This document shows positions 5,470 through 36,289 of a DNA stretch of 64,000 nucleotides, piece by piece. The stretch comes from Phaeosaccion multiseriatum (taxonomy: Eukaryota; Protista; Ochrophyta, other classes), in the NCBI GenBank assembly GCA_965112735.1, contig OZ218954.1, forward strand, positions 2,418,001-2,482,000. Reading direction: 5' to 3'. Position numbers and translations under genes: made by a program. The notes under the pieces were generated by a model, which saw only the letters and a list, made by a program, of their open reading frames with translations, searched no databases and had not been told where the DNA came from. Positions within the stretch are counted from its first letter, which is position 1. Each line of letters opens with the position of its first letter.

Positions 5470-6550
<1,081 letters not shown>

Positions 6551-13084: not shown

Positions 13085-13260
13085 TTCGACCAGCGTACTG
13101 GCGGCCGGTCGGTAAGCAGGTAGCACGCCAGCTCACCGGCGGCAGAACGTAGCAGCTGCGGTAGAGCGTAGCAAGTAGCTCATGGCGGCGGTGGCAGGTG
13201 ATGGTTGGCCGGCCGGCCGGTCGGCCGGTATGCGATTCCATCCGCATTTCCGAGTCGAGA
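13085..13260. mobile_element. Degenerate/internal copy of the TCGA-CC MITE family
   Basis: TACTGGCGGCCGG...GCAGGTAGCAC...GGCGGTGGCAG...TGATGGTTGGCCGGCCGG matches the interiors of 34170-34479 and 36048-36289. Bounded by TCGA at both ends. Confidence 0.6.
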
Positions 13261-13310: not shown

Positions 13311-13967
13311 ATGAGCGAGGAAAGGGCCAAGCGGTTGAGGGATTTGAAGCAGAGGGCGGAGTCTGCAAAGAGTGCCAGCAGCAGCGGCAGCGAAGCGGCA
13401 AGCACGACCCTCAAGTTCAGGAATTACAGGCCAGGCGAGGAGGTTCAGAAGCAGGGGGACGTTGAGGTCCTTCCCACTGTGCGACCGGCCGCCCACCTCG
13501 CTGGTGCGTACCATCGGATGGATATACCGTGATTTGAATACACGTGGGCCTCAATGAGTTTCGGCTGTGTTGCTGCTTGTATCGACATTTGTAGATGAGG
13601 GGGCAGGCCTTGGCGATGGAGAGTCGGGCGGCCACGTAGAGGCAGCAGGTGATGGGACGAGCATCCTTCGACGGGAGCTGGATAGAGTAAAGGTAAGGCC
13701 TCCGTCCCTCTGTCCTACTAACTGACTGCCAATTAACACGCGGGGCGGGGTGGATGTGCGGTCGTGGCTCGAATGGCGCAGGCAAATACGGACAGTTCAG
13801 TGCTGAATATTGCTCCGAACAAGGCCAACTGGGATCTGCAGCGAAACGTGGAGGGTAAGCTTAACAAACTGAACCGGCGAACACAGCGCGCGTTGGTGGA
13901 GATTCTACGGGAAAAGCTGAAGAGAGAGGCAGAAGAAGCAAGCTCAGATGAGGAGGAGGATGAGTAG
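13311..13967 (+). CDS. CCDC12: Cwf18/CCDC12 spliceosome-associated protein
   Basis: ERAKRLRDLK, LKFRNYRP and LNIAPNKANWDLQRNVEGKLNKLNRRTQRALVEILREKL. 3 exons. Confidence 0.9.
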
Positions 13968-14545
13968 CTCTCTTTGGCCTCCAGTTGATATCCACAAGAG
14001 CAGGTTGCGCCACCTCAGAACGGTCTTGGACAGCCAATGATTGTGGACCTTGCTTGCGACCGGAAAGTGCCAGAGTGAGGAGGGTGTGACTTCGATATCG
14101 GAGACATGGCAACGTGGACCGTTAAGTAGCAGGAGCTACCGACCGAATCTGAGCACCCTGCAGGCTGGCAAGTGTTGACGGCTTGCGCTGCCCTGAGGTC
14201 TTTGTGGCGTGCTTCAACTGCTGACGGCATTGACGCGTAGAAGTGGCGGCAGCGGGCATATGGACGCGCCACACGGACAAACATAAGGGATAAGGACTGA
14301 CACACTGCGCTCCAGAGGATCCGAGCCCCATACCATTCCTACTTGATCCAGAAGTACTGCACAGCGAAGAGATGTCAGACCCTTTGAAGGCAGCAGCTAG
14401 CTTTGACCGCCGCTGGGCCCTTCAACCCTCGCCAAGAGGAGGTGCAACACAGCAGTTAGGCTAATCCGTCATTGGCTTTTACCCAACGGCCTGGGAGAGA
14501 ATAGCTGGATCGGAAGTGCGCCAGGTTGAATATGTATTCAATTCT

Positions 14546-17500
14546 TCATCTGTCTGCTACTTGCTTTGTGCCATCTTGTAAGAAACGTTGTGGGTTTGCG
14601 AAAGGCGAAAACGTCCCTGACCCGTCAAGCCCGCCGCCTGCGGACTCCTCTACAGAGTGCTCAGCAACTCTTGTGTCTTTAGTCCCCTTGCAAACGCGAG
14701 CGGTGCGGACAAAAAAGATGCAGAACGCAGTGATGCAGAGACTCAAAACAATGGTACACGCCCCGACCGCTACCCATGCGAGGAGGGGCAAGCTCGTACC
14801 AAAGAGCTGTTCAACCCCCGCTGTGACAGGGTCGTCGATCCTCGTACCATTCGTACCTGCGTTTACATCTGCAATTGGCATTGCTTCAACCGACACATTG
14901 AAGGAGCACTCCACAGCCCAGCACTCCGATCGAGTAGTGTCCGGGGACAGAAACTCTTCATCGATACACTCTCCATTGGCTCCGTCGAACACAAGGACGG
15001 TGACCACGTCCTCCACGCTGGGGTTTTGACTCTGAGACCGGAGCGAAGAGGAGGACGATACACAGCAAGGTTACTTGCTGTTCCCCGCCCACATGATACT
15101 TCTTTGCTCTTCACCTGATATCGCAGACTGTTCAGAGCAACCAGGGCATCCTCCGGGACTGCGACGAACGTCATATCCTGGTCATTCGTCCCGCTGCCCT
15201 CGCACGCCCAGGAGGATTGTCGGAAGCAAAAGTCGTTGCTGTTGAAATCCAGACTCTCCACTCCATGGATAAGCCTTGTGAAACAAACAGGGAAACTCAA
15301 ATAAGTCGCGTACGGGATGCTACTAGTGAGGCTACTACGCAATGGTCCTACTGACCAATGGGTACTCACGTGAGGAGTCCATAGTGAGAGGAGATGCGAA
15401 AGCGGGAAACGTCCACGCCTCGATCCTGGTCCACCAGCTCGAAGCCTTGGATTGCAACCTCGTCCAGGGAGCCAGCACTTGACACACTTGTCGTCCCACT
15501 GCTGCCCAAGGGAGACACTGTAAATGGACCTGTGGGGCAGGCCAAGTGAACAGCATCGTTCACGTTTCCCACTTCCAGGCCTTGCGTTACTTCCACGCTC
15601 CGGTAAGCGGCATTGCCCGCGACAGCAGCGAAGAAGCTAAAGCTGTCGTCGGTGGCATTGGCAAGCTGACTGCCGTCCCAAGCAACGTTGGGCACGGAAA
15701 AGAAGTCTGCGGCCACGACGAACGACAGGGACCAGAGAGCATTAGACAAGTCGAGTTGGACTTGCTTTGAGAGTTGCTTCTTCCTACCTTGGGAAGGCTC
15801 GTAGATCACTTGAACCGCGCTGGCATAGGGGCTCTCTGCATTCTCAAGCAATGCATCGCCGACGGCAAGTGCCCTTTGGGTGGAAGGGTCGCGCAGAGTG
15901 CCACAGCTAGGAGTAGAAGAGATGACAAACTGAATGTCGAGGGCCTCATCGCTCAGGTCTACTGCATAGAGATTCACCAGGCTGGCCTGGTCCTCCGAAA
16001 CCTTCCACGACGTGTCACCGGGGATGTCGCTCGCAATAGTCGCTACCACGCTGCTGTACGCTGTAATGTCAATCACGCCCAAGAGCGACTCCGCCCCGCT
16101 GACGTCCAGGGCGGTGAAGGCTAGACTGTCCGTGTCCAGCAGACTGGTTATCGTGGCAAGGTGAGGGGACAGATTGAACGAGTTTCGAGGAAAAGGGGGA
16201 GGGGTTGGAGACGCTCAAGGAAGAAAGAAACATCGCCCCCCCCCAAAAGACCAAAGAATACTCACCCTTGTTCACTGGTGCTGGAAGCTCCTGCGGTATA
16301 CACATACGCGGCCTCAAGGGTCCACAGAAGGTCTCCTGCCTCCAACACGTCAGACGAAACGCTCCCATCTTCGTGCACCTGGTAAAGCTCGCCTCGGGAG
16401 GGAGGCGTCACTAGGCGGACCGAGCTAACGTAGTCACCCTCGTCAATGTCATACCCCGTGAAGGAAATGATGCTGGCACGGTTCCCAAAGACCGTGGCGT
16501 TCGAGTTGATCGCCGTGGGAGGGTCGTTCTTTGCAAGAACGTGAATCGCGACGGTGTTGTTGGATGTGCTCCGCAATCCAGTCACTCCATCTACCGCAAA
16601 ACAACGAAAGCTGAATGCGGAAGCGCAAGAGGGTTTGGTTAGTCCTTTTGGAATAGATTAGTATTCCCCACACGGTCTCACCTCGCATAGGCTTGAGTCT
16701 CCCCGCTGCTTTCGTCCTTCTCGGGCCGGTACATGAGGGAGAACGTGTTGGTGGAGCTGTTTCCCACCTCCGCCTGGAGCTTGTGGGGTACAGAAGAGAT
16801 GCTGTAGCCACTACTGTCCAGCAATTGGCCTCTCGTTGGGAGCGAGGCCACCCATAGCTCCGGCGCAGCTGCGTTAGCAGTATAGCCTGGAAAGGCGGGG
16901 TCTTCGTCTGCGTCCACTACGGAGACACTGAAGTTGGATAGATCACCAAAGGGCACAGGCTGCAGGTAAAAGCTCGGTGTGCTGTAATGATCTCCGCTCT
17001 CTCCATCTTCGTTCAGTACAACGGAAGCATCCAGCGGCACAGGCCGGCTGTTGGGCAGACCTGCTGCGTAATTCTGCTCAACCTCACCGGCAAGTAGAGG
17101 TCTAGCATATACAGCAGCCATGAAGACTGTGCCTGGCAGGGCCCTCGAGGAGACCTGGGGGTCGTCAGAATCGCTGCTGCTCCTGCCTCGACTCATGATG
17201 TTCAGGACGTAATCGTCCCTCCAAAACCCCTCTTGACCAAAGTCAGGCACACGCCATAGCGTCCTCACCAGCTCCAGGCCATTGACGTACGCCGTCACAG
17301 CGAGCATCCCTAACTCGACTGGTGCGAGCCTCTGAACAACCCAGAGAAGATGGACATACTGGCCGCTGACGAGGTTGTAGTCCGCCACCTGTACGTCCTG
17401 GCAGTCGCCCCCTACAGAACTTGTTCGCAATCCGTAGGTACCATTGCGCACATACATTTCAAAATCTAGTTCCTGCGATGCGCACTCCTCTGGAGAAGAA

Positions 17501-17910
17501 GACGTGAGGCTTGTTCGATTGCTGCTTGCCATCAAGGTGTAGGCGCCAGCCTTGTCCAGCACCGTATCGTCATGGTGGAGCCACATCTCCAGGGAAAACC
17601 CCTCCGAATCGGATGTCTGCAGCAGCTCATAAAAGGCTGCTGCATCACCTTGGGACTGAAGTCGAAAAGACCCAGCGGGGTTTGCCTGAGACAACACCCC
17701 CAAGCTATTGACGCACTCGACCCCATCTCCGTACACCGCGAGGCTGCCGAACGACCCAGGTGTTCCACTGCTTTGAAGCAAGTTGGCCTCGCATTCCACC
17801 CGTGGCATCTCATAGTGTACGTGAGGTGAGCTTACCCGGCCAGGAGAGTTGTAGGCGGACACTATTGCCCACGTCCCCGCAGAGAAAACACAGGACAGGA
17901 CCTTCATCAT
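14546..17910 (-). CDS. Type I membrane protein A: signal peptide, LamG/concanavalin-A-like domain, cadherin/Ig-like repeats, TM, short tail
   Basis: MMKVLSCVFSAGTWAIVSA signal. LamG_3-like FSLEMWL...HLLWV...AYVNG...AVYARPLLAGEVEQNYAAG. Cadherin-like DADED, NDPPTA and NVNDA motifs. TM LAWVAVGACTIVLSLCITAFCIFFV. Paralog of 29988-33881. Confidence 0.8.
14887..17065 (-). repeat. Left arm of 2179-bp inverted repeat (pairs with 31311-33489)
   Basis: Paired coordinates sum to 48376 throughout (e.g. ORF ends 16678/31698 and 15366/33010), so there are no indels. Only scattered substitutions, introns included. Confidence 0.97.
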
Positions 17911-18156
17911 GGAAAGGGGCTCTGCACAACTGTGAAACCCCAAGAAAGCGTCTTCTCCTCTTACGGTTGGGATTGCCCCCACCGCTGTCACAATTACAGC
18001 GCATCGCGTCTCGTTTTTTGGGCATCGGTCTTAATCAGGGATCAATCAAAATGAGGAAGGAGGAATGTCAAGTTCCGGCCACCAAGCGGAAATTTTCCCA
18101 TTTCAAAAATCCTTTCCCAGCTGTTGTTGCTGTCCAATTTGGAGCGAGCACTTCAG

Positions 18157-19743
18157 ATGAGCGATCCTCGAATCAAGCAAGGACGGGCGCTGCTTGATGC
18201 CAAGCGCTATGATGATGCCATAACGTGAGTATCGGCAAGCAACTAGAGACGCATCACCGAAGGATAGAAAAAGAAATAGGCCCCTCACCCCGACGGGCCT
18301 CGTCCTTGCTGTACGGCCAGGTATTTTGGTGAGCTCCTGCAGCTATCGTCGGGATCGTCTGGGGACGACCTTAGTATGCATCTAGGTCCCCTTTACTACG
18401 AGTACGGGAATGCTCTGCTAAGAAAAGCCGAAGACGGGACCAACATATTTGGGGAGACTGTCCAGCAGGCAGAGCAGGACAAGGTGGGTGCCGTGCCTTG
18501 AAGATGTTACAAGGATCTTGCGGAGGTGCTGAATCACCTCCGCCTTCTCTACCTTTGGCTTTTTGGCGTTGTTTTGGAGCACAGCTTGAGAAGAGCACTC
18601 AGGCTGCTGACGCTGGGGGAGCGGGAGAGGGTAGCTCATCCGCGACCCCCTCAGCCTCGTCTCCTATGGCGGTGGCTTCATCGCCTGCTGCACCTTCTTC
18701 AAGCGAAGCTGACTCATCCGAGGAGACTCCCGCAAATGGAGCCCTGCCCGAAAACGCAGAGGAAGGAGACGAAGACGGAGTCCGAGCTGCAATGGTTAAA
18801 AGCATGGTGGCACAGGTGAGCCCTTCCCCCGCGTCGGTCGTCTTTTTTAACGGGTTGCTCAAGCTACATTGAATGCTATCAACTCTCACGCAGCGGGAAC
18901 AGGACGAGGACGATATGGAGTGCGCATGGGAGAATTTAGAGGCTGCGAGGCTGGTGTACAGCAAGGGGGACAAGTCCTCCGCCAACTTGACTGCGTTGGG
19001 ACGTGTGCTGCTTCGCTTAGGAGACTTGAGCATGCTCAATGGGCAGTTTACACAAGCAGTGCAGGATTTTTCAGGCTGTCTTACGGGAGAAGAGGAGGGC
19101 CCGCGACCTCCGAACGGCGAACGAGGAATGGCAGAGGCTCATTACGAACTCGCATTGGCACACATCTACGCCTCTTCCACGGAGGGAATGGGTGCGGACG
19201 AAAAGAGGCAGCATACGGCTGACGCGCTGGCGAACTACGAGAAGTCCGCCGCCTTTTTCGGCAAAGTGATTGAAGCGCTACAGAAGGTGAGTAGCCGGAG
19301 CATGTCATTCTCTGATCACAGAACTTTCTTGGTCTCACCGACCCCGCCCACCTGCTGCGATTCCCCCCACGCCTCAGGCGAAGGCTGTTGAAGGAGACGC
19401 TGGAAATGAGCAGGTGAACGGGAAGGGTAAGGCGCAACCGAACAGCGCGTCGACGGCGGGTGTCAAGGAGGTGAACGAATTGGAAGAGTTGATTGATATC
19501 CGCGACACCATCATGGAGACCATTGCGACTGCAAAGAGCGGCGCAGAACAGGAAGCGTTGCAGTCTTTGAAAGAGCCCCAGACCGTAATCGGCTTTGGCG
19601 GCCCGACCGTTCCTGCAGCGGAGAAGGGGAAAGCACAAGAAGCAAGCTCCAAGGGAACCCTCCTGGTGGCTAAGAAGAAGAAGAGGTCGCCGGAGAGCAA
19701 CACAGAGCAGGGAAAGAAAGCGAAGACAGACCCAACGGGATGA
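18157..19743 (+). CDS. NASP/Sim3/Hif1-like SHNi-TPR histone chaperone
   Basis: LGPLYYEYGNALLRKAE, acidic insert, DDMECAWENLEAARLVY, RLGDLSMLNGQFTQAVQDF and AEAHYELALA, with a C-terminal basic NLS. Confidence 0.88.
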
Positions 19744-19896
19744 TCCATAGGACCTTTTTTTACAAATAAAAAGAAGCAATTTTTCTTTGCGGAGGTGGTG
19801 CATGTCTTTTTCCCGTCATTCATTTTACATGCACGCCAGCTCTCGACAACAAAGACTCGACGCAAGGCGGTGTGTTTTCCCCTCCCAAACACTCCT

Positions 19897-21165
19897 TCAA
19901 TCACCAGAGCTTTCCAAGAACTCGAGGTATTTGCCCAGTTGTATGCGGTAGGTGGTCATGTCGGATTGCGTGGTCCACTCATCAATGTCCTCTCGCATCT
20001 GCTTTTGTCCGCACTTCTCGGCGTAGATTAGACTTGCTACCCCACAGTCAAAGCCTGTCGTCTGCTGCTGCCTGGTGATTGCACTGTAGCTCCTTTGCAC
20101 CCACTTTGTATACAGTCCTGGAAGGGGCCATATTGTGTCCAACCAATGAAAGACCTCCTTGGGTATATAACGGAAGCTCACACCTTCCGAGGCATGGCGG
20201 GAACTACTCGTGCGCTTCGCCGGTTTGCCCATCGGCTCGAAAAGCTGCAACTCGGGAACAGGGTGATGCTGTACGCGAAGCAGGTTCCAGTGCCGATTCC
20301 TAATGTTGGCCAGGAAAATCACGGGCTTTCGAGCCCCGTAATCCAGCTGCCGCCCGATAATGTCTGTCGCAACCTCCATATCGGCCTTTGTCATGCTGCG
20401 CAGGCGAAACGCAGCAAACTCGATGGGCATGAAGTGCACGTCCGGATAGGCCATGGCAAACTTGCTCAGAACAATGTCTATGAAAGAGCTGGTGAGCCAG
20501 GTTTCGTCCGATACTTCGTCTCCCAACATTGCCCCCCGCAGCAGACCGTGCAAGGCAGAAATTCCCGCTCCAGCAGGACCAGTGTCCGCGTTCGGGACCA
20601 GAAAATCCTCCAAACAAGACTTGAATCCTGGCAAAGGCTCGGCCCACCGATATGGCATCATTGTGCGCGCAATTTGCAATCGAAGGGTGCGCCTCCCGCT
20701 CTGGTCTCGTGGAACATCTAATGCCTGGCCATCCTCCGCACTTGCGGAAGGCTCGTCCGTCGCATCCAGTAATGGCGCGCCCATACCACTACCACCACTG
20801 CCACAACTATCACTGATGCTCCTTTTGCACCTCCCCGCCTTGGCTTCCGAGCAGGCACCGTCACTCTCATCCTCCCAGTCTTCGCTGAGGCAGCTCCACT
20901 CCACCCCGCTCGACACGTCCTCAGGGCTCTCACTACTGGTGCTGGTGCTCGTGCTGTGAGTGCTGCTCCTACTGCTGCTGCTGTTACCGATCGAGGACCG
21001 ATGAGGGCTTTCGTCCTGACTGTCATCTGCTCCAGCCGCAGCCGCCGCCGCCGCTGCTGCTGCCGCAATGTCAAGAACGCTGCTTCGGGCACGTTTCTTC
21101 CCTTTCCATGCAGTAACAAGAGGAGCTGGGTGCAATCTCTCCACCTTTGTCCTTTGCCGGGCCAT
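19897..21165 (-). CDS. Ulp1/SENP-like (clan CE, C48) cysteine protease, intronless
   Basis: WLTSSFID, NRHWNLL, LFEPMG and QQQTTGFDCGV motifs. Confidence 0.8.
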   Translation of the reverse strand: MARQRTKVERLHPAPLVTAWKGKKRARSSVLDIAAAAAAAAAAAGADDSQDESPHRSSIGNSSSSRSSTHSTSTSTSSESPEDVSSGVEWSCLSEDWEDESDGACSEAKAGRCKRSISDSCGSGGSGMGAPLLDATDEPSASAEDGQALDVPRDQSGRRTLRLQIARTMMPYRWAEPLPGFKSCLEDFLVPNADTGPAGAGISALHGLLRGAMLGDEVSDETWLTSSFIDIVLSKFAMAYPDVHFMPIEFAAFRLRSMTKADMEVATDIIGRQLDYGARKPVIFLANIRNRHWNLLRVQHHPVPELQLFEPMGKPAKRTSSSRHASEGVSFRYIPKEVFHWLDTIWPLPGLYTKWVQRSYSAITRQQQTTGFDCGVASLIYAEKCGQKQMREDIDEWTTQSDMTTYRIQLGKYLEFLESSGD

Positions 21166-21280
21166 TGTTGCTCTCTTGTGGAGAGGGGGGGGAGGGGAGG
21201 GAGTTTTGAGTTTTGTGTAAAAGTTTCAGTTTAGCAACTTTGAACAGGGTACTTCGCTTGCAGCGGGTTCGCCTTCTTCC

Positions 21281-22468
21281 ATGGCGGGGGGGAGTACGAA
21301 GAGCGGGCCGGACCAAGTGCTTCCCTATCTCTACATTGGCAACAAGGCCAACGCCAAGAACATCGGAGTACTGCAGAGCCTTGGCATCAAACGGATCTTA
21401 AATGTGACTCCACAGGCACGCCAAAGTCTTGATTGTGTTTGTAGGCGCTGAGGGAGACTGGAACTCACGGCATCTCCTTTTCTGTGTTCGATTGTTGCTG
21501 TGAAGCAGAGAGCAACGGACCCAGTCGCAGGGTGCCCCAATTTTCACGAGAAGACTGGCTTGTTTGTTTACAAGAGAATACCCATTTTTGACAATCGGTG
21601 AGTTGGGGGGGGAGGCTGGCAGAAGGGGGCGGGTTCTTGGTGAAGCCACCATCTTAAAAGGAGAAAGGCAGACTGCTGACTACTACAATCGTGTTTGGTT
21701 GGTGCAGGGGTGAAGACATTCTGTCTCACATGGACGAGGCCATCGCATTCATCGAACAGGTGGGTGGGCGTACCGATGGGGTCGTGGGGGAAGGGGAGTA
21801 TGTGTGTAGCTCATACAGGGGGTATGGGAATGCCTTGTCTCATTCTTCTGCCTTGCTTGGTGTATGATCAGGGCAAGCATTATGGGTCGGTGCTCGTGCA
21901 TTGCAACAAGGGCGTCAGTCGCAGTTCGAGCATCGTGATGGGATACTTGATGAACAAGAGGGACATGAGTTTTAAGGAGGCTTTCGACTGTCTTCGCATG
22001 ACAAGACCGGTCGTGAATCCGCATGAAGGATTCATCTCACAGCTGAAGAAGTACGATGTGCAACTTGCCGCGGAGAGGAAAGGTAGCGACGGAGAGTCCA
22101 GCAAAACAGCGTCGATAGGGCCATCTTTGATGGACGGACAGGGGCAAGCTACTCCTAGTGATAGAGATGATGATGAGGGAGGAGCTGCAGCACAGGTGGG
22201 ACCTTGCATAGGACCCTCTCCGATAGTAGAACCTTGCCTTGGGCAAGACGACAAAGATGGAGCTGGAGTGTCGAGATTGGAAACGGCACCGCAGCCGGAA
22301 GAACTGCAAAATGAGCAAACCCCAAAGGGCCCGGCAATAGGACCAGCCAGGGCTGGACATTCCGCAAAGAGGAAGGCGGTGGAGGAGGCAGAGGGGGGTG
22401 CGAGACGGAAGGGGCCGACCTTGGGGCCAGCTGCACCTCCCCCTGGCGGAAATGGCCCACAACTGTGA
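21281..22468 (+). CDS. Dual-specificity protein phosphatase
   Basis: QVLPYLYIGNK, GIKRILNVT and VLVHCNKGVSRSSSIVMGYLM (HCxxGxSR). Probable GC-AG first intron at 21416-21508. Confidence 0.9.
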
Positions 22469-22675
22469 CGAGAAGGATCCTGCTCGAAATAGAGAGACTC
22501 TCTGGCTTGATATATATAATAAAATGAATTTACAGTATGTACATACACTGCGCTGCATATAGTGTTGCCTACTGCAGCCCACCGCCCTTGCCCTGTTTCC
22601 TCTGTAACAACGACCAAACGTAGAGATACACCTTGTCTCTCACTTCTCTCGTGCCGTAAATGGGATTGTGCACGT

Positions 22676-23226
22676 TATTTCCCGAAGTGGTGTTCGGTGA
22701 GACGTGCGTCGTTTCTGCAGCCTTGGGAAGAGGTCCTGCTGCTCCGGCTTGGTCGTCTTCAGTCAAAAGCTTTTCGATCCCGCCCATGGCACCCCTGCGT
22801 ACCAATCGGTGATGAAAGCACGGCAAAGTGAGAACCAAACTTGAGCGAGCTTACCTTGCTTGTCCGACCTACCTCAGCAACTCGGTCTCTTCGGTCGTGA
22901 GCGGTCCGTCCATTCGGCGCTTCTTCAGCATCTTGTCCAGAAGTTGCAAGCTCTGCTCTTTCTCGGCCGTGAGCGCTCCACCGCCGCCCAAACCTTGCCC
23001 ACAACCCAGCCCAGACATCTCGGAATTGGCCATCCGACAGTCGATTATACGCGCCCATTCGAGCATTTCCTTGTACGTGGGGACCGCTGTGACGGTGTAT
23101 AAGGCCCGAAGCTCCGCCCCATCCTCTCCTCCTCCTACCTTCTGCTGCTGAGGTGCTACTGTTGCTGCTACTGAAGCCCCCCTTCGCCGCGGCAGCAGCC
23201 CCCCCCCGACAAAGCCACCCACAGCT

Positions 23227-23264
<38 letters not shown>

Positions 23265-23324
23265 GGGCAGCACAGCCGCCCCCATGGCACCCGTTTTGTA
23301 GCTCTTTATGGACACTGCTGCCAT
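22676..23324 (-). CDS. Hypothetical protein, signal peptide then GG-F (possible plastid targeting); 3' end uncertain
   Basis: Poly-Leu signal peptide, about 150-aa exon ending at an AG|GTAGGT donor near 22872. Confidence 0.45.
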
Positions 23325-23548
23325 CTGTGTGTACCGTAGCGGTGAACCAATGCTCCAACGTGGATTGGGCGTTTCAATTTCTTCTATCTCTTTTCCCCCT
23401 CTCCTCTCCTTCAAGCAGCTAAATTCTATTCTAATATAGACTGTCATTAAAACTGAGCTCATTTGTCTTCTATAACGATGTAAAGGGTGGACGCCCATCC
23501 GCGTCTTGTCGCTCTCCACTTGACGTATAGGGGAGAGTTGACCTTGAC

Positions 23549-25737
23549 CTACAAGGTTCGTACAACAAGCCCCGAACTCAACTTGGGTTCAAACCAAGTT
23601 GCTTTGGGGCTCATCAGCTCTTCGGCGTCTGCGATGGCCATGACCTCCTCTATCGATACGGGGTACATGGCGAAGGCCACCGCCCACTGCGCAGGCTCGC
23701 TGGCATCCACGGACACCAGAGACTGCAGCTCCTTGGATCCGCGTATCCCGCCCACTGGTGGAAGATATTGTTGAAAGGAAAAAAGAGTGTGTAAGAGGAG
23801 GACAGGAACAGAGGGCACGAAGCAGGTGTAGGGTAACAACGAGGGCGCAGTACTCACCATATTTTATGCGTTCATCTGTCCGGGGATTCCCAACATTCAA
23901 AATGGGATGCAGTAGCTTGTCGTACAGGACCTGCACATCCAGGCTGTTCACAGGATGGTAGGGACCGACATGTTCCGGCCGCAATGTGAGGCGGTACCAC
24001 TTTCCCCGTAGACACATTCCCATCTGTCCTTTCCGGGGGGGCTCCGGCTGGTCGTGCTCCTCAAGTTCCTCGCACTCAAAAACAAGGCGGACGCGTTCTA
24101 AAAACAGCTCCTCTGGTAAGTTGTTGAGGTCCCGCACGACGCGATTGTACTCCATGATTTTCAATTGCGAGGAGGGAAAGAGTACTGCCAAGAAGAAGTT
24201 GAAAGGTTCCTCCCCTGTCACCACGTCCCCCCTGGCAATGGCTTCCTTGATTTTCATTTCACCAACTCGAAAGGCAGACGCGCTGCGGTGATGACCGTCG
24301 GCAATGTAAGAGCAAGGCACAGCTTCAAAGGCTTTGCAGAGTTCGCTTACGGCGTGGGGCTCCAGCACAGGCCACACAAAGTGCTTGATGCCATCATCGG
24401 CAGTCAGGGAGGTGGACGGTGGCTGGCTGTGGGGAGAGGAGCGAGGAGCGGAGCGAAACAGGCCAAAGTCAATGACATGGAAACGCGGTGCCCACCAAGG
24501 TCCAATCCAAGGTCGAATCACAGAGAAGCACCAGCCACCAAACATCCACAGGGTGCGACTATGGGTCGTATTCTAACGCTGCTTCCTCCCTCACCTAGTG
24601 ATGGACGAGATGATGGAGTCGACTGTCGCAGCATCTCTGTATGTGAGAAACACAGGGCCGGCGTTTGCATTCTGCACGTACGTCAGCCGCGTCCGATCAT
24701 TCTCTTTCTTCACTTGCGTTTTTTCATGGCGTTTAATAATACCCATGGCATAGTCCTCCACAGGTACACCTGCGACCAGGGGCCAAACGTAAAAAGGATG
24801 GTGAGAATACCAAAAAAAAAAGGGAGAAAAGGATTGAGCTGACCTGCGCAAACGCCGTACTGTATGTGGTCCCCCATTTGCTGCGCGTACACATATATAC
24901 CCGGTGTGTCGTCGTAGACGAGCCACCTGTTTTTGGTGGGGAGAGGTGACTTCGTCAAGAGGCCCAAAAATCAAGCATTGTCAAAAACGTCAGCCTTGCG
25001 CTCTCCCTCCCTCCCGAACTCACTGCTTTTGGATAAACTCCTGGAGGTTCAACTTTCCCATTTCGTATACACGCTCATCGTACTGTGAAATATCGACCGG
25101 CAAATCTATTTCAGGCTTGATAACCTAGAGAGGAGGGGGGGGGGTGAGGGGAGAGACAGGGAGAGAAGAGGGAGGGAGAGGGATAGAAAGACACACATAT
25201 GAGAGCGGACGGACGAGGACAAGGGTGGAGAGGGAGGAGACCGATGGGTGGAGCGGAGTGGCAGGGTAGGGACCAAGAGTGGACAGAATCGGCCCATGAA
25301 GGTAGCAAACAAGACGAAGGGGAGAAGAGGAGAGGAGAGGAGCGAAGGAGGAGGAGGAGGAGGAGGAGGAGAATAGCATTGGAGGAGGAGGAGGAGGAGG
25401 AGGAGGAGGAGGAGGAGGACGAGGACGAGGAGCATCAGTAGGAGGAGGAGGAAGAGGAAGAGGAGAAACAGCAGCAGCAGGAGGAGGGGGGAGGGAGGAG
25501 GAGGAGGAGGGAGGGAGGGGAGGAGATCATGAGATCATGACACAGGAAGGGCACACTTCTCCGCCGCAGATAATACGGGCCTGCTGCTCTACTCACCCTG
25601 AGGAAGGTCTTCTCCCCTCTCTCCTGGTAAATGTCTCTAGCCTCCTTTGAGTCCAGCACATCATAGGGAGGAGAGGCAACAGCCTCCGCGAGTCCAGGCC
25701 CTGGACGCAAAGCTCGGAACGGCTTTAACCTCACCAT
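23549..25737 (-). CDS. DUF1015 family protein (bacterial-type, ParB/Srx-like ADGHHR motif), multi-exon
   Basis: PFRALRP...ASPPYDV, IKRHEKT...KENDR, NAGPVFLTY, YIADGHHRSASA, YNRVVRDLN, SLDVQVL, PRTDERI..VGGIRG and MSPKATWFEPKLSSGL. Confidence 0.88.
25130..25525. repeat. Purine-rich (GGA)n low-complexity tract inside DUF1015 intron 1 (25125-25596)
   Basis: Direct inspection. Confidence 0.85.
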
Positions 25738-26022
25738 GCCCGGCCTTGGGCACACCAATCAGGCCCTGCTACTCCTGCTACTCCTGCTACTCCTGCTGCT
25801 GCTGTGCTGGTGCTGCCTGAAGTAGCTTATACTATCTAAGAGAAAAAAAAATGGTATGGGTGGGACAGCCCCCCGGGAAAGGCGTATGCCTCCACTTTGT
25901 GTATTACAACGCGGGAGACACCGACAAAAGAGACCCAGGTTTGCACACAGCTGTAGAGAGATTGCAGAGAGCCTGCAGCAGCAGCGCCGCAGTAACAGCA
26001 GGCGCCGCGACTCTTGCCGACT

Positions 26023-29000
26023 ATGGCAAGCTTCAAGTATGCTCCCGTGTCCACGGTACGAGAAATAAGCAAAAGCAAAAATCCTTTTCGTTGTTCCTTC
26101 CCTCACCCGCCCTGTTGCGCCACACACTCTCTCCCCCCATGATCAGGAGGAAGGGGCAGCAGGCAAACCCTCGTCCTCTGGGTCTGCTTCCAATGGACCA
26201 GGGGCCGGCTACGATGAAGACAGCGACACGATCATGACGAAACGAATGCCTTACTGTCTTGGCATGTTGGTGTTGTTGGCCATCATTTACGTGCTCAGCC
26301 GGACGGAGAGTAGTGAAGCGTGTCCACCCTGCGCCCCGCAGTCATCCTCTCCTTTGCGCGAAGCATGCCCACCTGCGACAGCGTGCCCGTCAGTCCAGCC
26401 CCCTCCAGCGGCCGCAGCAGCAGCAGCCCCGCCGAGCGAGTTTGATATCGGGGCGTATCGGCGCGAGCGCCTTGCCCAGACGCCTCCTCACATCATCGAA
26501 TGTGCAAAGGCTGAAGAGGGCGCTTCGCAGGACGCCTGCCATCTGCCACGAAGTACGCGCTATGCTGCTGTGGGGCAGAAGGGGGCTACGCTGTGGATGA
26601 CGGGTCTGTCGGGATCAGGAAAGAGCACCATTGCCATGGCCTTGGAGGAAGAGTTGGTCAGGCAGGGCAAGCACGTGTACCGTCTGGATGGCGATAACAT
26701 CCGCACTGGGCTAAATAGGGACCTCGGCTTTTCAGCAGACGATCGTGACGAGTCTGTGCGCCGAGTGGGGGAGCTTGCCTGTCTTTTCTCTGACTCTGGT
26801 GTCATTACTCTCGTGAGCTTGGTGAGCCCTTACCGCGAGGCAAGAGACGCGGTGCGGAAGCGACATGAGGAGCAGGGTATTCCCTTCTTTGAGACGTTTA
26901 TGGATGTGCCTCTTGAGACGGTGCAGTCTCGCGATCCGAAGGGGCTTTACGCCAAGGTGGAGGCGGGGGAGTTGAAGGGATTCACAGGTGTCGATGCGCC
27001 CTACGAAGCTCCCCTGAATGCAGAGATTGTGCTGCCCAACCGTGACATGACAATTGAGCAGTGTGTCGCCTCTTTATTGCGGACTCTGGAGGCGAATGGC
27101 ATTCTTTCTGGCGGTGACAGAGACTCGACGAAGCTGCCCATGCCGGATGGGGATGAGATTGTTGATCTCCACGTTGCTCCAGGAGACAAGGTGGGGAGGA
27201 TTGCAGAAGCGGCTACGCTGCCCAAGGTTCTGCTCAGCGACATTGACCTCAACTGGCTGCAGACCGTGGGAGAGGGATGGGCGAGCCCGCTCAAGGGATT
27301 CATGCGAGAAGGTGTCCTGCTGCAGACTCTCCATTTCAACTCGTACCTCGTGGACCCGCACAATGTGACGGCCAACTATGGCTTCAACGAGAAGACGACA
27401 GACTTTACGAAGATGCCAGTGACTCGGCCCCCTTCCAGGGTGTCCATGTCAGTGCCCATTGTGTTGCCCTGCACCGACTTCACCAAGGCCTCCATCGAGG
27501 GGAGCGGAAAGGAGGCCGTGGCTTTAGTCAACAAGGGGGGAGATACCGTGGCAATCTTGCGAAACCCCGAGGTTTACGCAAATCGAAAGGAGGAAATTGT
27601 GACGCGGCTGTTTGGTGTGATTGATCCTGGTCACCCTTACATTGCGCACATTTACAGCGGTGGAGACTGGCTTATTGGAGGGGAGGTGGAGCTTCTAGAC
27701 AGAATACGGTACAACGATGGGCTTGATCAGTGGCGACTTACGGCGAGGGAGGTCAGAGAGGAATTTGCCAAGAAGGGAGCTGATGTGGTGTATGCCTTTC
27801 AAACCAGAAACCCCACGCACGCTGGACACGCCTACCTCATGCGCACGGCGGGGGAGATGCTGAAGGACCAGGGCTACAAGCGCCCCGTCCTTTGGCTGTC
27901 ACCGCTCGGGGGCTGGACTAAAGAGGATGACGTGCCGCTGGATGTTCGAGTCAAGCAGCACGAAGCCGTCCTCCAGGAAGGCATGCTCGATCCGTCGTCC
28001 ACTGTCATGGCCATTTGGCCTAGTCCAATGATTTACGGGGGGCCGACAGAAGTGCAGTTTCACGCCAAGTCTCGCCGCAGTGGTGGGGCTAGTTTCTTTG
28101 TCGTGGGACGTGATCCAGCCGGTATGAAGGGAAGCGGCCTGGCCGAGGCGCATCCAGATGACGATCTCTACGACCCTCAACACGGGCGCTTCGTCTTGGC
28201 AATGTCCCCTGGTGTGGGTGACATGAAGATGCTCGACTTTCAGCAGGTGTACTACGACACGACGACCCACACCATGACGGCCAAGGACCCTTCCCGCCCC
28301 GACGATTTCATTTCCATTTCTGGCAGCAAAATGCGAGCCCTCGCCGCCCAAGGGGCACGTCCTTGCCCTTCTGAGATTCCGCTGGACCTTTTGGCTGCCA
28401 ACTGCATTCCTCCTGGCTTCATGGTGGACTCCGGGTGGGACATTGTTTGCGACTATTACCAGAACATTGACACCAAGACTTGGGTGCCGTACAGCCAGAC
28501 GGTGAAGGACCCCATTGTTGCATCGTATGCGAGCGTGAACCCGGGCACGGCCTTCGGCACGAGCGAGTTTGCCCTCCTTCTCAAGGACCCCACTTCTGGT
28601 TCAACCATCAGCCCGTGGCACGACATTCCTCTGCAGTCGTCAAGCGAGCAGGGCATGTACAACTTTGTGGTGGAGATTCCAATGTACCAGACTGCCAAGA
28701 TGGAAGTGGCAAAAGACATTGCGGGTAATCCCATTATGCAAGACGAGAGCAATGGAAAGCCCCGGTACTACCACTACGGCGTGCCCTTCTTCAATTACGG
28801 CCTTCTTCCGCAGACCTGGGAGGACCCCAATGTGAAGGACAGCGCAGGGCACGGAGGTGACAACGATCCCATCGACGTGATTGAGATTGGAGTTGACCCT
28901 CTACCCATGGGCACTGTCACCCCCGTCAAGGTGCTGGGGTCTCTCGAGCTCATTGACGAGGGAGAGACGGACTTCAAAATCATTGCCATCCGAACTTCGG

Positions 29001-29266
29001 ACCCCCTGGCCGCCAAGCTTCGAAACATGCAGGACGTGGAGCAGCACAAGCCGGGCACACTGGCCAGCATTGTTGATTGGCTCAAGAACTACAAGACAGC
29101 TGAGGGGAAAGGCGTCAACATATTGGCATCTGAAACCCCTTCTTCAAGCGAGGAGGCGGAGCAAGTCATTGGGCAGACGCACGAGCGTTGGCAGCAGCTC
29201 ACCGCCGGACAAGCCACGCATGATTCCTCGTTCTGGTTGGGGGCCAACGCCGACCACCCCTGGTGA
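26023..29266 (+). CDS. APS kinase - ATP sulfurylase - inorganic pyrophosphatase triple fusion (PAPS synthase) with N-terminal membrane anchor
   Basis: APSK GLSGSGKST and LDGDNIR. ATPS QTRNPTHAGH and VGRDPAG. PPase SPWHDIPL, NYGLLPQTWEDP, GDNDPIDV and DEGETDFK. Inferred exon 1 26023-26055 (MASFKYAPVST) and intron 26056-26146 are in frame with ORF 26234-29266. Confidence 0.95.
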
Positions 29267-29635
29267 AGAAGTGAAGCATGGCCCCTTTCTTGGAGAGGGG
29301 GTTCGCAGAGCATGGTGCATGCCACTTCCAGGCCTCCCCCCGTGAGGTTGTGATGCTGCCAGGCAGGGCAGCAGGGCGCAGGGCATGTGGAACAACAGTT
29401 GACCACACGAACCCTCCACCTGCACCACCACCACAGCCCAGCCGCCGCCGCCGCCGCTACTGCTGATGGAGAGTTGCGGCGGGTGAGCGAATCGCAATTT
29501 GAGAAGGGGTAGTGGTATGACTCGGTGAATCCGGCATTCTTGAATACAGAAGCGAAACAGCTTTAGTCATCATCTCTCACATACTCCAGAAGCATCACCT
29601 GCTAGTGTCCGCTTCTCCTCTAGTCTTCGTCTCGC

Positions 29636-29810
29636 TCGGCCCCTGACACGCCACTGAGCTCGCGCGCTATCCCTGGCGTCAGTCGGCGTGGGTGATGACA
29701 AGCATATGGGCAGGGCAGGGCAGAACCGGCGCTTGTCGGCAGGCTTTTAGGTTTGTTTTGGCTCGATAGCATAGCTACTGAGCAACATGCAACAGCGTGT
29801 CAGGGGTCGA
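29636..29810. mobile_element. MITE, variant TIR TCG(G/A)CCCCTGACACGC
   Basis: TCGGCCCCTGACACGC ... GCGTGTCAGGGGTCGA inverted ends. Interior is related (inverted) to 33945-34173. Confidence 0.7.
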
Positions 29811-29987
29811 TCTTGCCGCTCTCTCTTCCCTCTCCTCCCCTACCCACCCCCCCCCCTCCCTCTTCCCGCCAAGATTCAGTTTAAGTTTGTTCGCCCCCAA
29901 CTGAGGGCAACATAACCTCCAAAAAAACATTCCAAATGAAAACCCCCTCTCCTACTCCTATAATGTCACAACGAGAGAGCGCGAGGG

Positions 29988-32900
29988 ATGGAGCGATGGA
30001 CTCTATCCTTGTGTGCTGTCGTGTTCGCCACGCGACTAGGGTATGTGGCCCCGGCGACCAACACTCCTCCCACAGCACTTAACTCCAGCACCACGGTCTT
30101 CGCCGGAGAAAGCACTAATATAGTGTCATTTACGGGGGTCGATGTGGACGAGGGTGACTACATCAGCTCGGTTCGACTGGTCAAAGCCCCAACAAAAGGG
30201 TTTCTTTTCCAGGTAGATCCAGACGGAAGCATTACAGCTGATACCATAGCAGACGGAGATCTTCTCCGTACGCTGTACGCATCATATGTGGCTTGGAGTG
30301 GGCAATTGAACGCTTTGGAAGAAAGGTGCGTAGCACTAGAAGGGAAGGGGGGGTGTAGTAGACTCATCTTAAAGTCTGACTCCTCTTGCTTCTTGGTTGG
30401 TGTCCTGTGTGTCCAGTGTCATTGATACAGACCTTTTGGTCTTTCGCGCCCTGGATGTGAGCGGAGCGGAGTCGGCGGCGGGGTTTATTGAACTTGATAT
30501 CCTGGGTCCCAACGCATTCCCCCAGAGGGTTGCAGAACCCGCGTTCTTCTTTGAATTTCCAGAAAGTGAGTGCGGGGTGGGCAAGCTCCACAACAGTGGG
30601 CTGGGCTGGTTCGGAGATCTCACTGTAAATGCTGAGGGAGTAAGCTGTCCTGACAGCCTCGGGGTCGTTTCAACCGGCAACCCGCAAAATGCGACGCGGC
30701 TTTCTTCGACCCTTTCTGCAACAGACATGAATGAGCGAGTGCGAGAGAGTGACTTTGAGGGCTTCAGTTTGGAATTTTGGCTGCAGCACAATGACCTGGA
30801 AGAGGATTCGACACACGACTACAGCCTGATGAGTGTGAGCAATCCAAACATCGCCTCAGAGAAGTGGCGGGACTGCGCAGAAAATTCGAATTTCGAGCTT
30901 CGACGGAGGGAGAATCGCTATTACTTCATGCTACGGGGTGGGGACAAGACATGCGAGGCCCAAGAGTTCTCGTTTGATATCCTTGAAGGTGTTCCTTACC
31001 ATGTCGTGATCATTGTTGACATTTCAGAATTTTTTTGGGGCTTTAGAATGTTGAGCCTCATCCTCTACGTCAATGGCGTGAAGGAGGAGCAAAGGTGGAT
31101 TGCATCCATTAGCAAGTCCGATACTGTAGATGCGTGGGCAGACCGGTGGCGTGACGACTACGTCCTGAACATCATGAGTCGCGGCGGTAGCGATGGGGAG
31201 TACTTTTACAACATCCTCGAGAGAGAGGTCGTGCCGTGGTCGGGAGTGCTGTTTTTGGCTGCCATGTACGCCAGACCGCTATCATTTCCGGAGGTCAGCC
31301 AGAACCTGGTAGCAGGTCTGCCCAACAGCCGGCCTGTGCCGCTGGATGCTTCCGTTGTACTGAACGAAGATGGAGAGAGCGGAGATCATTACAGCACACC
31401 GAGCTTTTACCTGCAGCCTGTGCCCTTTGGTGATCTATCCAACTTCAGTGTCTCAGTAGTGGACGCAGACGAAGACCCCGCCTTTCCGGGCTATACTGCT
31501 AACGCAGCTGCGCCGGAGCTATGGGTGGCCTCGCTCCCAACGAGAGGCCAATTGCTGGACAGCAGTGGCTACAGCATCTCTTCTGCACCCCACAAGCTCC
31601 AGGCGGAGGTGGGAAACAGCTCCACCAACACGTTCTCCCTCATGTACCGGCCCGAGAAGGACGAAAGCAGCGGGGAGACTCAAGCCTATGCGAGGTGAGA
31701 CCGTGTGGGGAATACTAATCTATTCCAAAAGGACTAACCAAACCCTCTTGCGCTTCCGCATTCAGCTTTCGTTGTTTTGCGGTAGATGGAGTGACTGGAT
31801 TGCGGAGCACATCCAACAACACCGTCGTGATTCACGTTCTTGCAAAGAACGACCCTCCCACGGCGATCAACTCGAACGCCACGGTCTTTGGGAACCGTGC
31901 CAGCATCATTTCCTTCACGGGGTATGACATTGACGAGGGTGACTACGTTAGCTCGGTCCGCCTAGTGACGCCTCCCTCCCGAGGCGAGCTTTACCAGGTG
32001 CACGAAGATGGGAGCGTTTCGTCTGACGTGTTGGAGGCAGGAAACCTTCTGTGGACCCTTGAGGCCGCGTATGTGTATACCGCAGGAGCTTCCAGCACCA
32101 GTGAACAAGGGTGAGTATTCTTTGGTCTTTTGGGGGGGGGCGATGTTTCTTTCTTCCTTGAGCGTCTCCAACCCCTCCCCCTTTTCCTCGAAACTCGTTC
32201 AATCTGTCCCCTCACCTTGCCACGATAACCAGTCTGCTGGACACGGACAGTCTAGCCTTCACCGCCCTGGACGTCAGCGGGGCGGAGTCGCTCTTGGGCG
32301 TGATTGACATTACAGCGTACAGCAGCGTGGTAGCGACTATTGCGAGCGACATCCCCGGTGACACGTCGTGGAAGGTTTCGGAGGACCAGGCCAGCCTGGT
32401 GAATCTCTATGCAGTAGACCTGAGCGATGAGGCCCTCGACATTCAGTTTGTCATCTCTTCTACTCCTAGCTGTGGCACTCTGCGCGACCCTTCCACCCAA
32501 AGGGCACTTGCCGTCGGCGATGCATTGCTTGAGAATGCAGAGAGCCCCTATGCCAGCGCGGTTCAAGTGATCTACGAGCCTTCCCAAGGTAGGAAGAAGC
32601 AACTCTCAAAGCAAGTCCAACTCGACTTGTCTAATGCTCTCTGGTCCCTGTCGTTCGTCGTGGCCGCAGACTTCTTTTCCGTGCCCAACGTTGCTTGGGA
32701 CGGCAGTCAGCTTGCCAATGCCACCGACGACAGCTTCAGCTTCTTCGCTGCTGTCGCGGGCAATGCCGCTTACCGGAGCGTAGAAGTAACGCAAGGCCTG
32801 GAAGTGGGAAACGTGAACGATGCTGTTCACTTGGCCTGCCCCACAGGTCCGTTTACAGTATCTCCCTTGGGCAGCAGTGGGACGACAAGTGTGTCAAGTG

Positions 32901-33881
32901 CTGGCTCCCTGGATGAGGTTGCAATCCAAGGCTTCGAGCTGGTGGACCAGGATCGAGGCGTGGACGTTTCCCGCTTTCGCATCTCCTCTCACTATGGACT
33001 GCTCACGTGAGTACCCATTGGTCAGTAGGACCATTGCGTAGTAGCCTCACTAGTAGCATCCCGTACGCGACTAATTTGAGTGTCCCTGTTTGTTCCACAA
33101 GGCTTTTCCGTGGAGTGGAGAGTCTGGATTTCAACAGCAACGACTTTTGCTTCCGACAATCCTCCTGGGCGTGCGAGGGCAGCGGGACGAATGACCAGGA
33201 TATGACGTTCGTCGCAGTCCCGGAGGATGCCCTGGTTGCTCTGAACAGTCTGCGATATCAGGTGAAGAGCAAAGAAGTATCATGTGGGCGGGGAACAGCA
33301 AGTAACCTTGCTGTGTATCGTCCTCCTCTTCGCTCCGGTCTCAGAGTCAAAACCCCAGCGTTGAGGACGTGGTCACCGTCCTTGTGTTCGACGGAGCCAA
33401 TGGAGAGTGTATCGATGAAGAGTTTCTGTCCCCGGACACTACTCGATCGGAGTGCTGGGCTGTGGAGTGCTCCTTCAACGTGTCGGTTGGAGGTCATGTC
33501 GTCGACCAAGCGCCACGGGACACAGAGAGTGAAGGGGAGACAAGGACCTTTTTCGGTGTCGATTTACCGCTGGAAGCTTGGTTGGCTGTCGCTACCGGGG
33601 CAGCAGTGTGTTCTCTCTGCGTTGTGGTACGGTCCTTGATCCTTCTACGCAATATGTGTTGCCCCCGTGACGGGGGAGAAGATGAAGAAGATGAACAATA
33701 TTTCGCTCCAAAGAAGAGAAAGAGAAAGAGAAAGAGACGAGGAAGAGAAGGCCGTGTCAGTGAAACGTGGTATGAGGACCTTGAGCGTTCGGATCGGGGA
33801 CTCCTCGAGAGAGATCAACGGCGTAAGAGACATCAACGCCGTCAACGCCGGCAGAATACACGCGAATGCTATAGGGCGTAG
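29988..33881 (+). CDS. Type I membrane protein B: signal peptide, extra cadherin-like repeat, LamG-like domain, cadherin/Ig-like repeats, TM, basic tail
   Basis: MERWTLSLCAVVFATRLGYVAPA signal. NTPPTA repeat. FSLEFWL...HVVII...LYVNG...AMYARPLSFPEVSQNLVAG. Core shared with gene A. TM AWLAVATGAAVCSLCVVV. Tail PKKRKRKRKRR. Confidence 0.8.
31311..33489 (+). repeat. Right arm of 2179-bp inverted repeat (pairs with 14887-17065)
   Basis: Reverse-complement identity from AGCAGGTCTGCCCAAC to GTGTCGGTTG. Confidence 0.97.
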
Positions 33882-33944
33882 GCTCGGCTCTGATGGATGA
33901 CTTTAACACCACGAATACATGGCCCTTTGTAGATAAGCTTTTGA

Positions 33945-34173
33945 AAGCGGGATATTGCCCGATAGCTACGGCAATGGACCGGTCGCCCCCACTTGCTGAT
34001 AGCGCGCCGGCCCTGCCTTAGCTTCGATGCCCATATGCCTGTCACCAGCCACCCTGCCCTGCCAAGGGGGGGGGGGGGTAAATAGCTGGTAGCGGGCCGG
34101 CAGACACTGGCAATAGTTGATAGCTTGCCGGCTGACGCCGGCGATGGCGATAGCTCAATAGCGTCAGGGTCGA
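33945..34173. mobile_element. Truncated MITE ending in GCGTCAGGGTCGA
   Basis: Right TIR plus GATAGC/GCCGGCTGACGCCGGCG subrepeats. Left boundary approximate. Confidence 0.6.
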
Positions 34174-34479
34174 CCTCTGACGTGCTATCGAGCGATTCTC
34201 GGTAGCATGCTACCGGGCCCTCCAGACCCGGTAGCACGATACTGGCGGCCGGCCGGTAGCAGGTAGCACACCAGCTTACGTCGGCGGTAGCAGGTAGCAG
34301 GTAGCAGCTAGGTCACGCCGGCGGTGGCAGCTGATGATTTGCCGGCCGGTCGGCCGGTAGCAGGTCAAGGCCGGCTGACGCCGGCGGTGGCAGGAAGCAC
34401 GCCAGCTGGCGCCGGGGGAAGCAGGTAGCACGTTGGCTGACGCCGGCGGTAGCAGGTAGCAGGTAGTACGTCAGGGGGG
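34170..34479. mobile_element. MITE of the TCGA-CC family, sharing a TCGA with the preceding element
   Basis: TCGACCTCTGACGTGCTATC ... GTAGTACGTCAGGGG. Inverted homolog of 36048-36289. Confidence 0.75.
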
Positions 34480-36047: not shown

Positions 36048-36289
36048 TCGACCCCTGACGTGCTACCTGCTACCGCCAGTGCCAGCCGGTATGCCATCTG
36101 CTACCGCCGGCGTCAGCCGGCCTTGACCTGCTACCGGCCGACCGGCCGGCTGGCCAACCATCAGCTGCCACCGCCGGCGTGAGCAAGCTGCTACCTGCTA
36201 CCGCCCGCGTCAGCTGGTGTGGTACCTACTACCGGCCGGCCGCCAGTATCGTGCTACCGAGAATCGCTCGGTAGCACGTCAGGGTTCGA
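36048..36289. mobile_element. MITE of the TCGA-CC family, full length
   Basis: TCGACCCCTGACGTGCTACC ... GGTAGCACGTCAGGGTTCGA. Confidence 0.8.

Follow-up and report, generated by a model that had tools for sequence, protein, structure and literature searches.

In a 64,000-nucleotide stretch of the Phaeosaccion multiseriatum genome (contig OZ218954.1 of assembly GCA_965112735.1, positions 2,418,001 to 2,482,000; hereafter the window, in whose own coordinates all positions are given), two divergently transcribed genes, A and B, encode putative surface proteins that are nearly identical in their central ectodomains and strongly diverged at both ends. The shared segment, introns included, forms the arms of a 2.2 kb inverted repeat around a 14 kb spacer. 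We consider its identity to be probably the product of interlocus gene conversion confined to the central ectodomain of two old inverted paralogues, and not the substrate of a programmed switch. For the window's own pair the evidence for conversion is a contrast in divergence between the core and the two ends; the evidence from tree incongruence comes from a head-to-head pair of the same family in eustigmatophytes.

Two genes joined by an inverted repeat

A repeat finder places the arms at 14884-17085 and 31291-33492 (2202 nt, 99% complementary, separated by 14205 nt). Base-by-base comparison of the arms gives 29 mismatches, 10 of them packed into the outermost bases, and the gap-free core of 2179 nt (14887-17065 / 31311-33489) contains 19 substitutions; a gene A position is converted to its gene B counterpart by subtracting it from 48376. 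A BLAST comparison of the window with itself returned no second self-match of comparable kind elsewhere in the window. The initial annotation of this DNA had described a 2179-bp gap-free core with about 20 substitutions, genes A and B pointing apart on the minus and plus strands, and identity that stops abruptly at domain borders, at the end of the LamG-like domain and before the transmembrane (TM) helix. Its coordinates and counts are accurate, both borders are sharp, and the orientation is as described, with the 5′ ends of both genes inside the spacer. The parts of the two genes are as follows.

14549..17910, minus strand: gene A coding region, an open frame of 970 amino acids; exons 17910-16682, 16610-16266, 16143-15788, 15706-15369, 15273-15115 and 15031-14549, with RNA-supported introns; order of parts: signal peptide, ConA/LamG-like head, shared core with Cadherin_4, TM helix, cytoplasmic tail of the 60-residue class
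17086..17910, minus strand: head A, unique; signal peptide and ConA/LamG-like domain, transcribed (run X5 contig 17036-18040)
14884..17085, minus strand: arm A, central ectodomain of gene A (residues ~276-858), from the repeat finder, the open frame and spliced RNA contigs; five introns, 15032-15114, 15274-15368, 15707-15787, 16144-16265 and 16611-16681, from spliced contigs of run X5
14549..14883, minus strand: tail A, unique; juxtamembrane stalk, TM helix and cytoplasmic tail
29988..33881, plus strand: gene B coding region, an open frame of 1116 amino acids; exons 29988-30325, 30417-31694, 31766-32110, 32233-32588, 32670-33007, 33103-33261 and 33345-33881; order of parts: signal peptide, extra cadherin-like module, LamG-like head, shared core, TM helix, Lys/Arg-rich tail
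29988..31290, plus strand: head B, unique; signal peptide, extra cadherin-like module and LamG-like domain, with a run X5 arm-head B junction contig at depth 12.2
31291..33492, plus strand: arm B, central ectodomain of gene B, from the repeat finder and the gene model
33493..33881, plus strand: tail B, unique; stalk, TM helix, CC motif and Lys/Arg-rich cytoplasmic tail

The first intron of gene B (30326-30416) was placed by homology and not from RNA, and its other introns are homologous to those of gene A. An AlphaFold model of head A (predicted local distance difference test score 82.5, predicted template modelling score 0.82) adopts a ConA-like/LamG jelly roll, and in a Foldseek comparison with the PDB it matches jelly-roll domains of ConA-like lectins at 10-19% identity (E about 1e-8, probability 1.00). 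The best of these matches are receptor-binding or lectin subdomains of assorted bacterial proteins, and they support a predicted ConA-like fold rather than a function for head A. Pfam scanning found no Laminin_G_3 match in gene A and a sub-threshold one in gene B (19.9 bits versus a gathering score of 27.6, E = 9e-4); eustigmatophyte homologues have precomputed PF13385 matches. In the core, Cadherin_4 (PF17803) reaches 27.7 bits against a cut-off of 25.1 in the exon at 31719-32111. The extra module of gene B (residues 23-139) repeats the core module at 54% identity, shares its intron position and scores a sub-threshold 20.5 bits for PF17803. The earlier designation of A and B as surface-receptor genes is a fair description as regards a surface protein with a lectin-like head, with "receptor" remaining putative.

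The inner border of the repeat lies at the end of the ConA/LamG-like domain (gene A residues ~275-284) and the outer border ~40 residues before the TM helix. Identity between A and B drops abruptly at both, and on the arm side it climbs to ~100% within a few bases. Past each border A and B can still be aligned in frame, with the low identity usual among old paralogues, which indicates that the borders are the ends of tracts and not of a duplication; a recent partial duplication in place of conversion is ruled out by this diverged in-frame homology. A 35-nt block that is 91% identical lies just within the spacer beyond the inner border. We saw no short-site structure at the arm borders, the arms being 2.2 kb of homologous gene sequence, introns included.

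Near-identical repeats commonly cause misassembly, and short-read contigs end exactly at the arm borders here, both of which would fit a misassembly, with the repeat collapsed or wrongly joined or a single gene entered twice. Of eight public runs that contain this DNA, all in contig form, we compared the contigs of four over 13400-19300. In the three DNA runs, all from one sample, the four arm/flank junctions (tail A-arm, tail B-arm, arm-head A and arm-head B) each have a contig of their own, the diagnostic sites show both sets of alleles, and the arm has 1.4-2.0 times the depth of its flanks. Together these observations exclude assembly collapse. The 19 differences between the arms, with both allele sets in independent contigs, the RNA contigs that run into both heads, and the same architecture in independent assemblies of other algae likewise count against an artefact, and we reject that explanation as having next to no probability. 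No contig in these runs spans an arm, and allele paths are mosaic through bubble-popping.

The fourth run, X5, derives from a second sample of this species and is labelled "DNA?", but is evidently complementary DNA: its contigs skip the five GT-AG introns inside the arm, as well as introns of neighbouring genes. They enter head A (depth 38.9) and head B (depth 12.2), showing that both genes are expressed. Across the 5.9 kb compared, X5 differs from the window at four non-diagnostic sites, and wherever its spliced contig covers an exonic diagnostic site, the allele is that of the window's arm A.

One irregularity in depth was noted at tail B. In DNA run X1, a 768-nt contig joining the arm to tail B (window ~33449-34217) has a depth of 48.7, compared with 142 for tail A and 121 for head B, while in run X3, from the same sample, the two tails are equal in depth (50 and 49.6). 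The deficit in X1 could reflect library bias or structural heterogeneity at tail B.

Concerted evolution of the core

Divergence between A and B differs sharply among the three parts of the genes. The core has 99% protein identity, with 2.3% of fourfold-degenerate sites differing; the LamG heads have 40% protein identity and differ at 66% of fourfold-degenerate sites, which is saturated; and the tails have 23% protein identity and differ at 71%. Within the core, the exons carry 16 changes in 1727 nt (0.93%) and the introns three in 452 nt (0.66%). Since introns are as identical as exons, core identity stems from recombination and not from selection on the protein, and the saturated fourfold sites of the heads identify A and B as old paralogues. 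The exonic changes comprise 11 synonymous and five non-synonymous substitutions, indicating that both copies have been under purifying selection since the last conversion. Core differences are clumped, with a clean stretch of 693 bp (p = 0.012) and five differences within 38 bp (p = 0.004); this mosaic spread of the 19 differences fits several overlapping tracts of different ages.

We propose that A and B are old, divergently transcribed paralogues encoding type I membrane proteins of an ochrophyte-specific family, each built from a signal peptide, a ConA/LamG-like head, a cadherin-like/Ig-like core, a TM helix and a short tail. The central 2.2 kb of both genes, introns included, would have been overwritten by non-crossover homologous recombination between the inverted copies, probably more than once, and the last event to cover the whole tract would not be recent. 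Too much divergence between the copies for pairing may set the ends of the tracts, or selection may remove conversions that extend into a head or a tail. Each gene would in this way retain its own ligand-binding head and its own TM/cytoplasmic tail while the core evolves in concert, and inversion of the 14 kb spacer would be a rare by-product at most. The mechanism, conversion without crossover, and the reason for the fixed borders are the parts of this scheme that we infer; the repeat, the gene models, expression, the divergence contrast and the pattern in relatives are direct observations.

Relatives provide a second instance of the same arrangement. An exhaustive HMMER search with exon 1 of gene A returned 132 cluster representatives, the best at 38% identity; the members named are from Phaeothamnion, Ascophyllum and Tribonema, which marks this as an ochrophyte family. 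A syntenic locus with a head-to-head pair of family members is present in eustigmatophytes, to which we assign the loci because the glutamine synthetase of one of them, L003, is 91% identical to that of Nannochloropsis oceanica. The gene order (complete in N. oceanica, locus L020) is aldo-keto reductase, gene L (minus strand), an RRM/PWI gene, gene R (plus strand), abhydrolase and glutamine synthetase. L and R share an inverted repeat of ~1.33 kb with borders that are alike in every eustigmatophyte species, and which ranges widely in arm identity:

L002 (5110-6415 and 10779-12084, 4.3 kb apart): 1306 nt, 100% identity
N. oceanica: 1338 nt, 91.6% identity
L003: 1341 nt, 82% identity
L008, a fourth species: 1345 nt, 79% identity

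L002 is a eustigmatophyte-like genome of 65% GC, and is the best candidate locus for arm-to-arm recombination that is active now.

Trees of the separate parts of L and R disagree in the manner expected of such exchange. The heads separate into L (support 100/100) and R (97/99) clades, as do the post-core regions (100/100). The core instead groups by genome: the two L002 copies are identical, and those of N. oceanica are sisters (91/96). For the eustigmatophyte pair, the trees thus confirm that concerted evolution is restricted to the core. When the window, L002 and L003 are placed on one alignment, the inner tract border falls at the same protein position, gene A residues 259-284, at the end of the LamG domain. 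The outer border differs, lying at gene A residue ~857 in the window versus ~673-697 in eustigmatophytes.

The head tree joins the window's A with its B (96/94) and places Tribonema next to them, and the aldo-keto reductase, RRM/PWI, abhydrolase and glutamine synthetase neighbours of the eustigmatophyte locus were not found in the window. Given the missing neighbours and the head tree, the window's genes are not demonstrably the same ancestral pair as L and R; they arose either by independent duplication or from a pair whose heads were last homogenised long ago.

Possible inversion of the spacer by crossover

A single crossover between the arms would invert 17086-31290 and join head A to tail B and head B to tail A, in frame and with the passenger genes intact. 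The initial annotation had made this point, and its geometry is correct; it had gone on to propose an invertible head-swapping cassette acting as a combinatorial recognition switch, with six passenger genes in the spacer and no recombinase visible in the window. Five passenger genes can be identified, the sixth being an open reading frame (ORF) without assignment:

17911..29987: spacer interior between the two start codons
~18480-19750, plus strand: SHNi-TPR/NASP-like gene, from Pfam, with introns at 18481-18891 from RNA-derived contigs
19897-21165, minus strand: Ulp1-like C48 peptidase
21695-22468, plus strand: dual-specificity phosphatase (DSPc), from Pfam
23589-25758, minus strand: DUF1015, from Pfam
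26234-29266, plus strand: fusion of adenosine 5′-phosphosulfate (APS) kinase, ATP sulfurylase and pyrophosphatase, from Pfam

The ORF at 19897-21165 is intron-less and encodes 422 amino acids with an Ala/Ser-rich low-complexity N-terminus; it has no Pfam match, and protein-language-model features assign it to Ulp1/C48 peptidases (score 0.93). As for a recombinase, Pfam scans revealed neither a recombinase nor a nuclease among the large spacer ORFs tested, the rest of the window not having been scanned exhaustively.

A side observation concerns the intron-less ORF at 26234-29266, which encodes 1010 amino acids with a hydrophobic N-terminus followed by APS kinase, PUA/ATP sulfurylase and inorganic pyrophosphatase; such a three-enzyme fusion is the sulfate-activation enzyme of the stramenopile type.

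A programmed, regulated switch that flips the spacer at a useful frequency to re-pair recognition heads with signalling tails would be served by borders at domain edges and by expression of both genes, and a 2.2 kb repeat around 14 kb matches the dimensions of the mating-type (MAT) locus of Ogataea polymorpha (PMC5720833, PMC4238957). The arms themselves argue otherwise. They differ by 0.9% overall and by 2.3% at fourfold sites, with differences spread along their whole length. Mutation rates in microalgae are typically 10^-10 to 10^-9 per site per generation, and at such rates this divergence implies that no exchange has covered those sites for millions of generations. Crossovers come with conversion tracts, and if frequent they would hold the arms at full identity, as seen in L002, so arm divergence counts against an active switch. 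The arm-A alleles shared by the second sample, the lack of head-tail chimeras in relatives, the lack of a recombinase or nuclease in the spacer ORFs tested, and the fact that we identified no regulatory feature all point in the same direction. We found no positive evidence for the proposed cassette and regard a programmed switch as very unlikely. Equally hard to credit is the related idea that the core is kept as a recombination substrate, with a meaningful rate of flipping that yields functional chimeric receptors and hence a recombinase-free eukaryotic switch; were it so, the same device would be latent in the eustigmatophyte pair, one species of which has 100% identical arms. The alternative that the initial annotation held in reserve, domain-restricted gene conversion with freely diverging heads and tails, is well supported and is strengthened by the relatives.

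A less demanding possibility is unprogrammed, recurrent inversion polymorphism, in which occasional crossovers by non-allelic homologous recombination flip the 14-kb spacer on population or evolutionary timescales without regulation, each flip making head-A/tail-B and head-B/tail-A genes and leaving both orientations among strains; such a locus would resemble the flip/flop region of yeast chromosome XIV or the mammalian FLNA-EMD region. The geometry permits this, the chimeras would be in frame, and homogenised arms mean that recombination intermediates have formed there. In yeast, moreover, homogenisation of inverted repeats is tied to recurrent inversion (PMC9731477). Against it stands the record of the eustigmatophytes, in which every full-length gene or protein from five taxa is parental in its head-tail linkage: the L head and L tail lie beside the reductase and the R head and R tail beside the abhydrolase in all five, and no head-tail chimera was found among them. 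A weak hint of inversion comes from a metagenomic relative, L004 (1987-10392), in which a single family gene lies head-to-head with RRM/PWI and tail-to-tail with abhydrolase, so that RRM/PWI and the abhydrolase flank stand in the opposite relative orientation to that of the Nannochloropsis L/R layout. The head and post-core region of this gene are assigned to neither L nor R (approximately unbiased test, p between 0.29 and 0.53), and the layout could either predate the duplication or have been left by an old inversion of the spacer. On balance, we judge recurrent inversion polymorphism to be unlikely, though considerably less so than a programmed switch.

Several points nonetheless weigh against conversion without inversion as the whole account of this locus. 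Conversion and crossover share recombination intermediates, so some crossovers are to be expected wherever conversion has taken place, and a figure quoted for the share of conversions resolved as crossovers is ~4% (PMC9731477), which makes some inversion over evolutionary time plausible at the A/B locus. Spacer orientation in this alga is known from one assembly only, with no arm spanned by the read-derived contigs. A single orientation in five taxa has a chance of ~1/16 under free flipping, and is suggestive but not decisive. Finally, the conservation of the inner border in independent lineages may reflect selection beyond the simple limits of homology.

Short-read contigs of Nannochloropsis-like genomes, and some contigs from NCBI as well, end at or inside the inverted repeat of this family. 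L016 (at 14388) and L017 and L018 (at 6040-6041) stop at the outer border, while L012 (both ends) and L013 (left end) stop within the repeat. The repeat evidently breaks assemblies, and could thereby hide orientation variants.

Comparison with known systems helps to place the A/B locus. In bacterial hsdS loci, Rci shufflons and the Hin/Gin/Cin systems, inverted repeats lie in coding sequence and inversion recombines variable ends with a constant part. These invertase systems use short specific sites, an adjacent dedicated recombinase and a high switching frequency. In contrast, the A/B arms are 2.2 kb of ordinary homology, and the spacer ORFs tested include no recombinase. The closest precedent is the flip/flop region of Saccharomyces cerevisiae chromosome XIV, in which 24 kb are enclosed by 4.2-kb inverted repeats that consist of paralogous sporulation genes (Salzberg et al. 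2022, PMC9731477). Those repeats are continually homogenised by conversion and have borders conserved across the genus, and the region has re-inverted recurrently over evolutionary time while its orientation is stable on laboratory timescales (PMC9731477). Both loci have long inverted repeats of paralogous genes around a multi-gene unique segment, homogenisation within species, borders kept across species, and no dedicated recombinase. They differ in that the yeast repeats hold whole genes, so that inversion alters no protein, whereas the A/B arms are intragenic and a flip would swap tails; and both orientations are documented within and between yeast species, whereas the A/B family has one orientation in every genome examined.

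The mating-type flip/flop of O. polymorpha, a 19-kb region between inverted repeats, requires no site-specific recombinase (PMC5720833, PMC4238957). In Ogataea and Komagataella, inversion is induced by nitrogen starvation via Efg1-Rme1-Ste12, flipping moves genes into centromeric silencing and both isomers are readily seen (PMC4238957, PMC5720833). These yeasts resemble the A/B locus in having a similar-sized segment between inverted repeats, theirs being inverted by homologous recombination with no invertase, and they demonstrate that eukaryotes can regulate such an inversion. The induction, the two isomers and the position effect of Ogataea have no demonstrated counterpart at A/B. Arm-to-arm gene conversion is also a property of the human Y palindromes. 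The X-linked FLNA-EMD inverted repeats provide another precedent for arm-to-arm homogenisation (Caceres et al., cited in PMC9731477). With these the A/B pair shares the concerted evolution of inverted duplicates, sharp tract borders and divergent flanks, but the palindromes and FLNA-EMD mostly homogenise whole genes, while the A/B tract is confined to mid-gene by a limit that recurs in two algal lineages.

Surroundings of the locus and implications for the family

Two kinds of repeat flank the genes. A (GAGG)n microsatellite at 36608-41336, 3 kb downstream of gene B, runs uninterrupted for 4.7 kb (~1180 copies, 93% matches) with extreme strand asymmetry, its GC skew being near 1; the G-rich strand could form G-quadruplexes. 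A short element rich in GGTAGCAGGTAGC words has copies at 13096-13230, 34229-34433 and 36058-36259, and also at 243-402. One copy lies downstream of gene A and one downstream of gene B, and two inverted copies that are 85% identical bracket a B9-C2 ciliary-protein exon at 35433-35858.

The A/B locus is a clean new example of a known process. It offers intron-validated concerted evolution limited to one part of a gene, in an uncharacterised family of algal surface proteins that have identical cores and diverging heads and tails. If inversion does occur, it would be the first eukaryotic inversion by homologous recombination to recombine protein domains. N. oceanica is genetically tractable and has many sequenced strains, and flipping of intragenic inverted repeats is directly testable there.

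The head-to-head layout and the inner border recur in two ochrophyte lineages, that of the window's alga, for which Tribonema is nearest in trees, and that of Nannochloropsis and its relatives, and this recurrence suggests a constraint. A and B may have a partner in common that they contact through the core, or the two proteins may pair. Another possibility is that selection on binding specificity makes the end of the LamG domain a hard limit.

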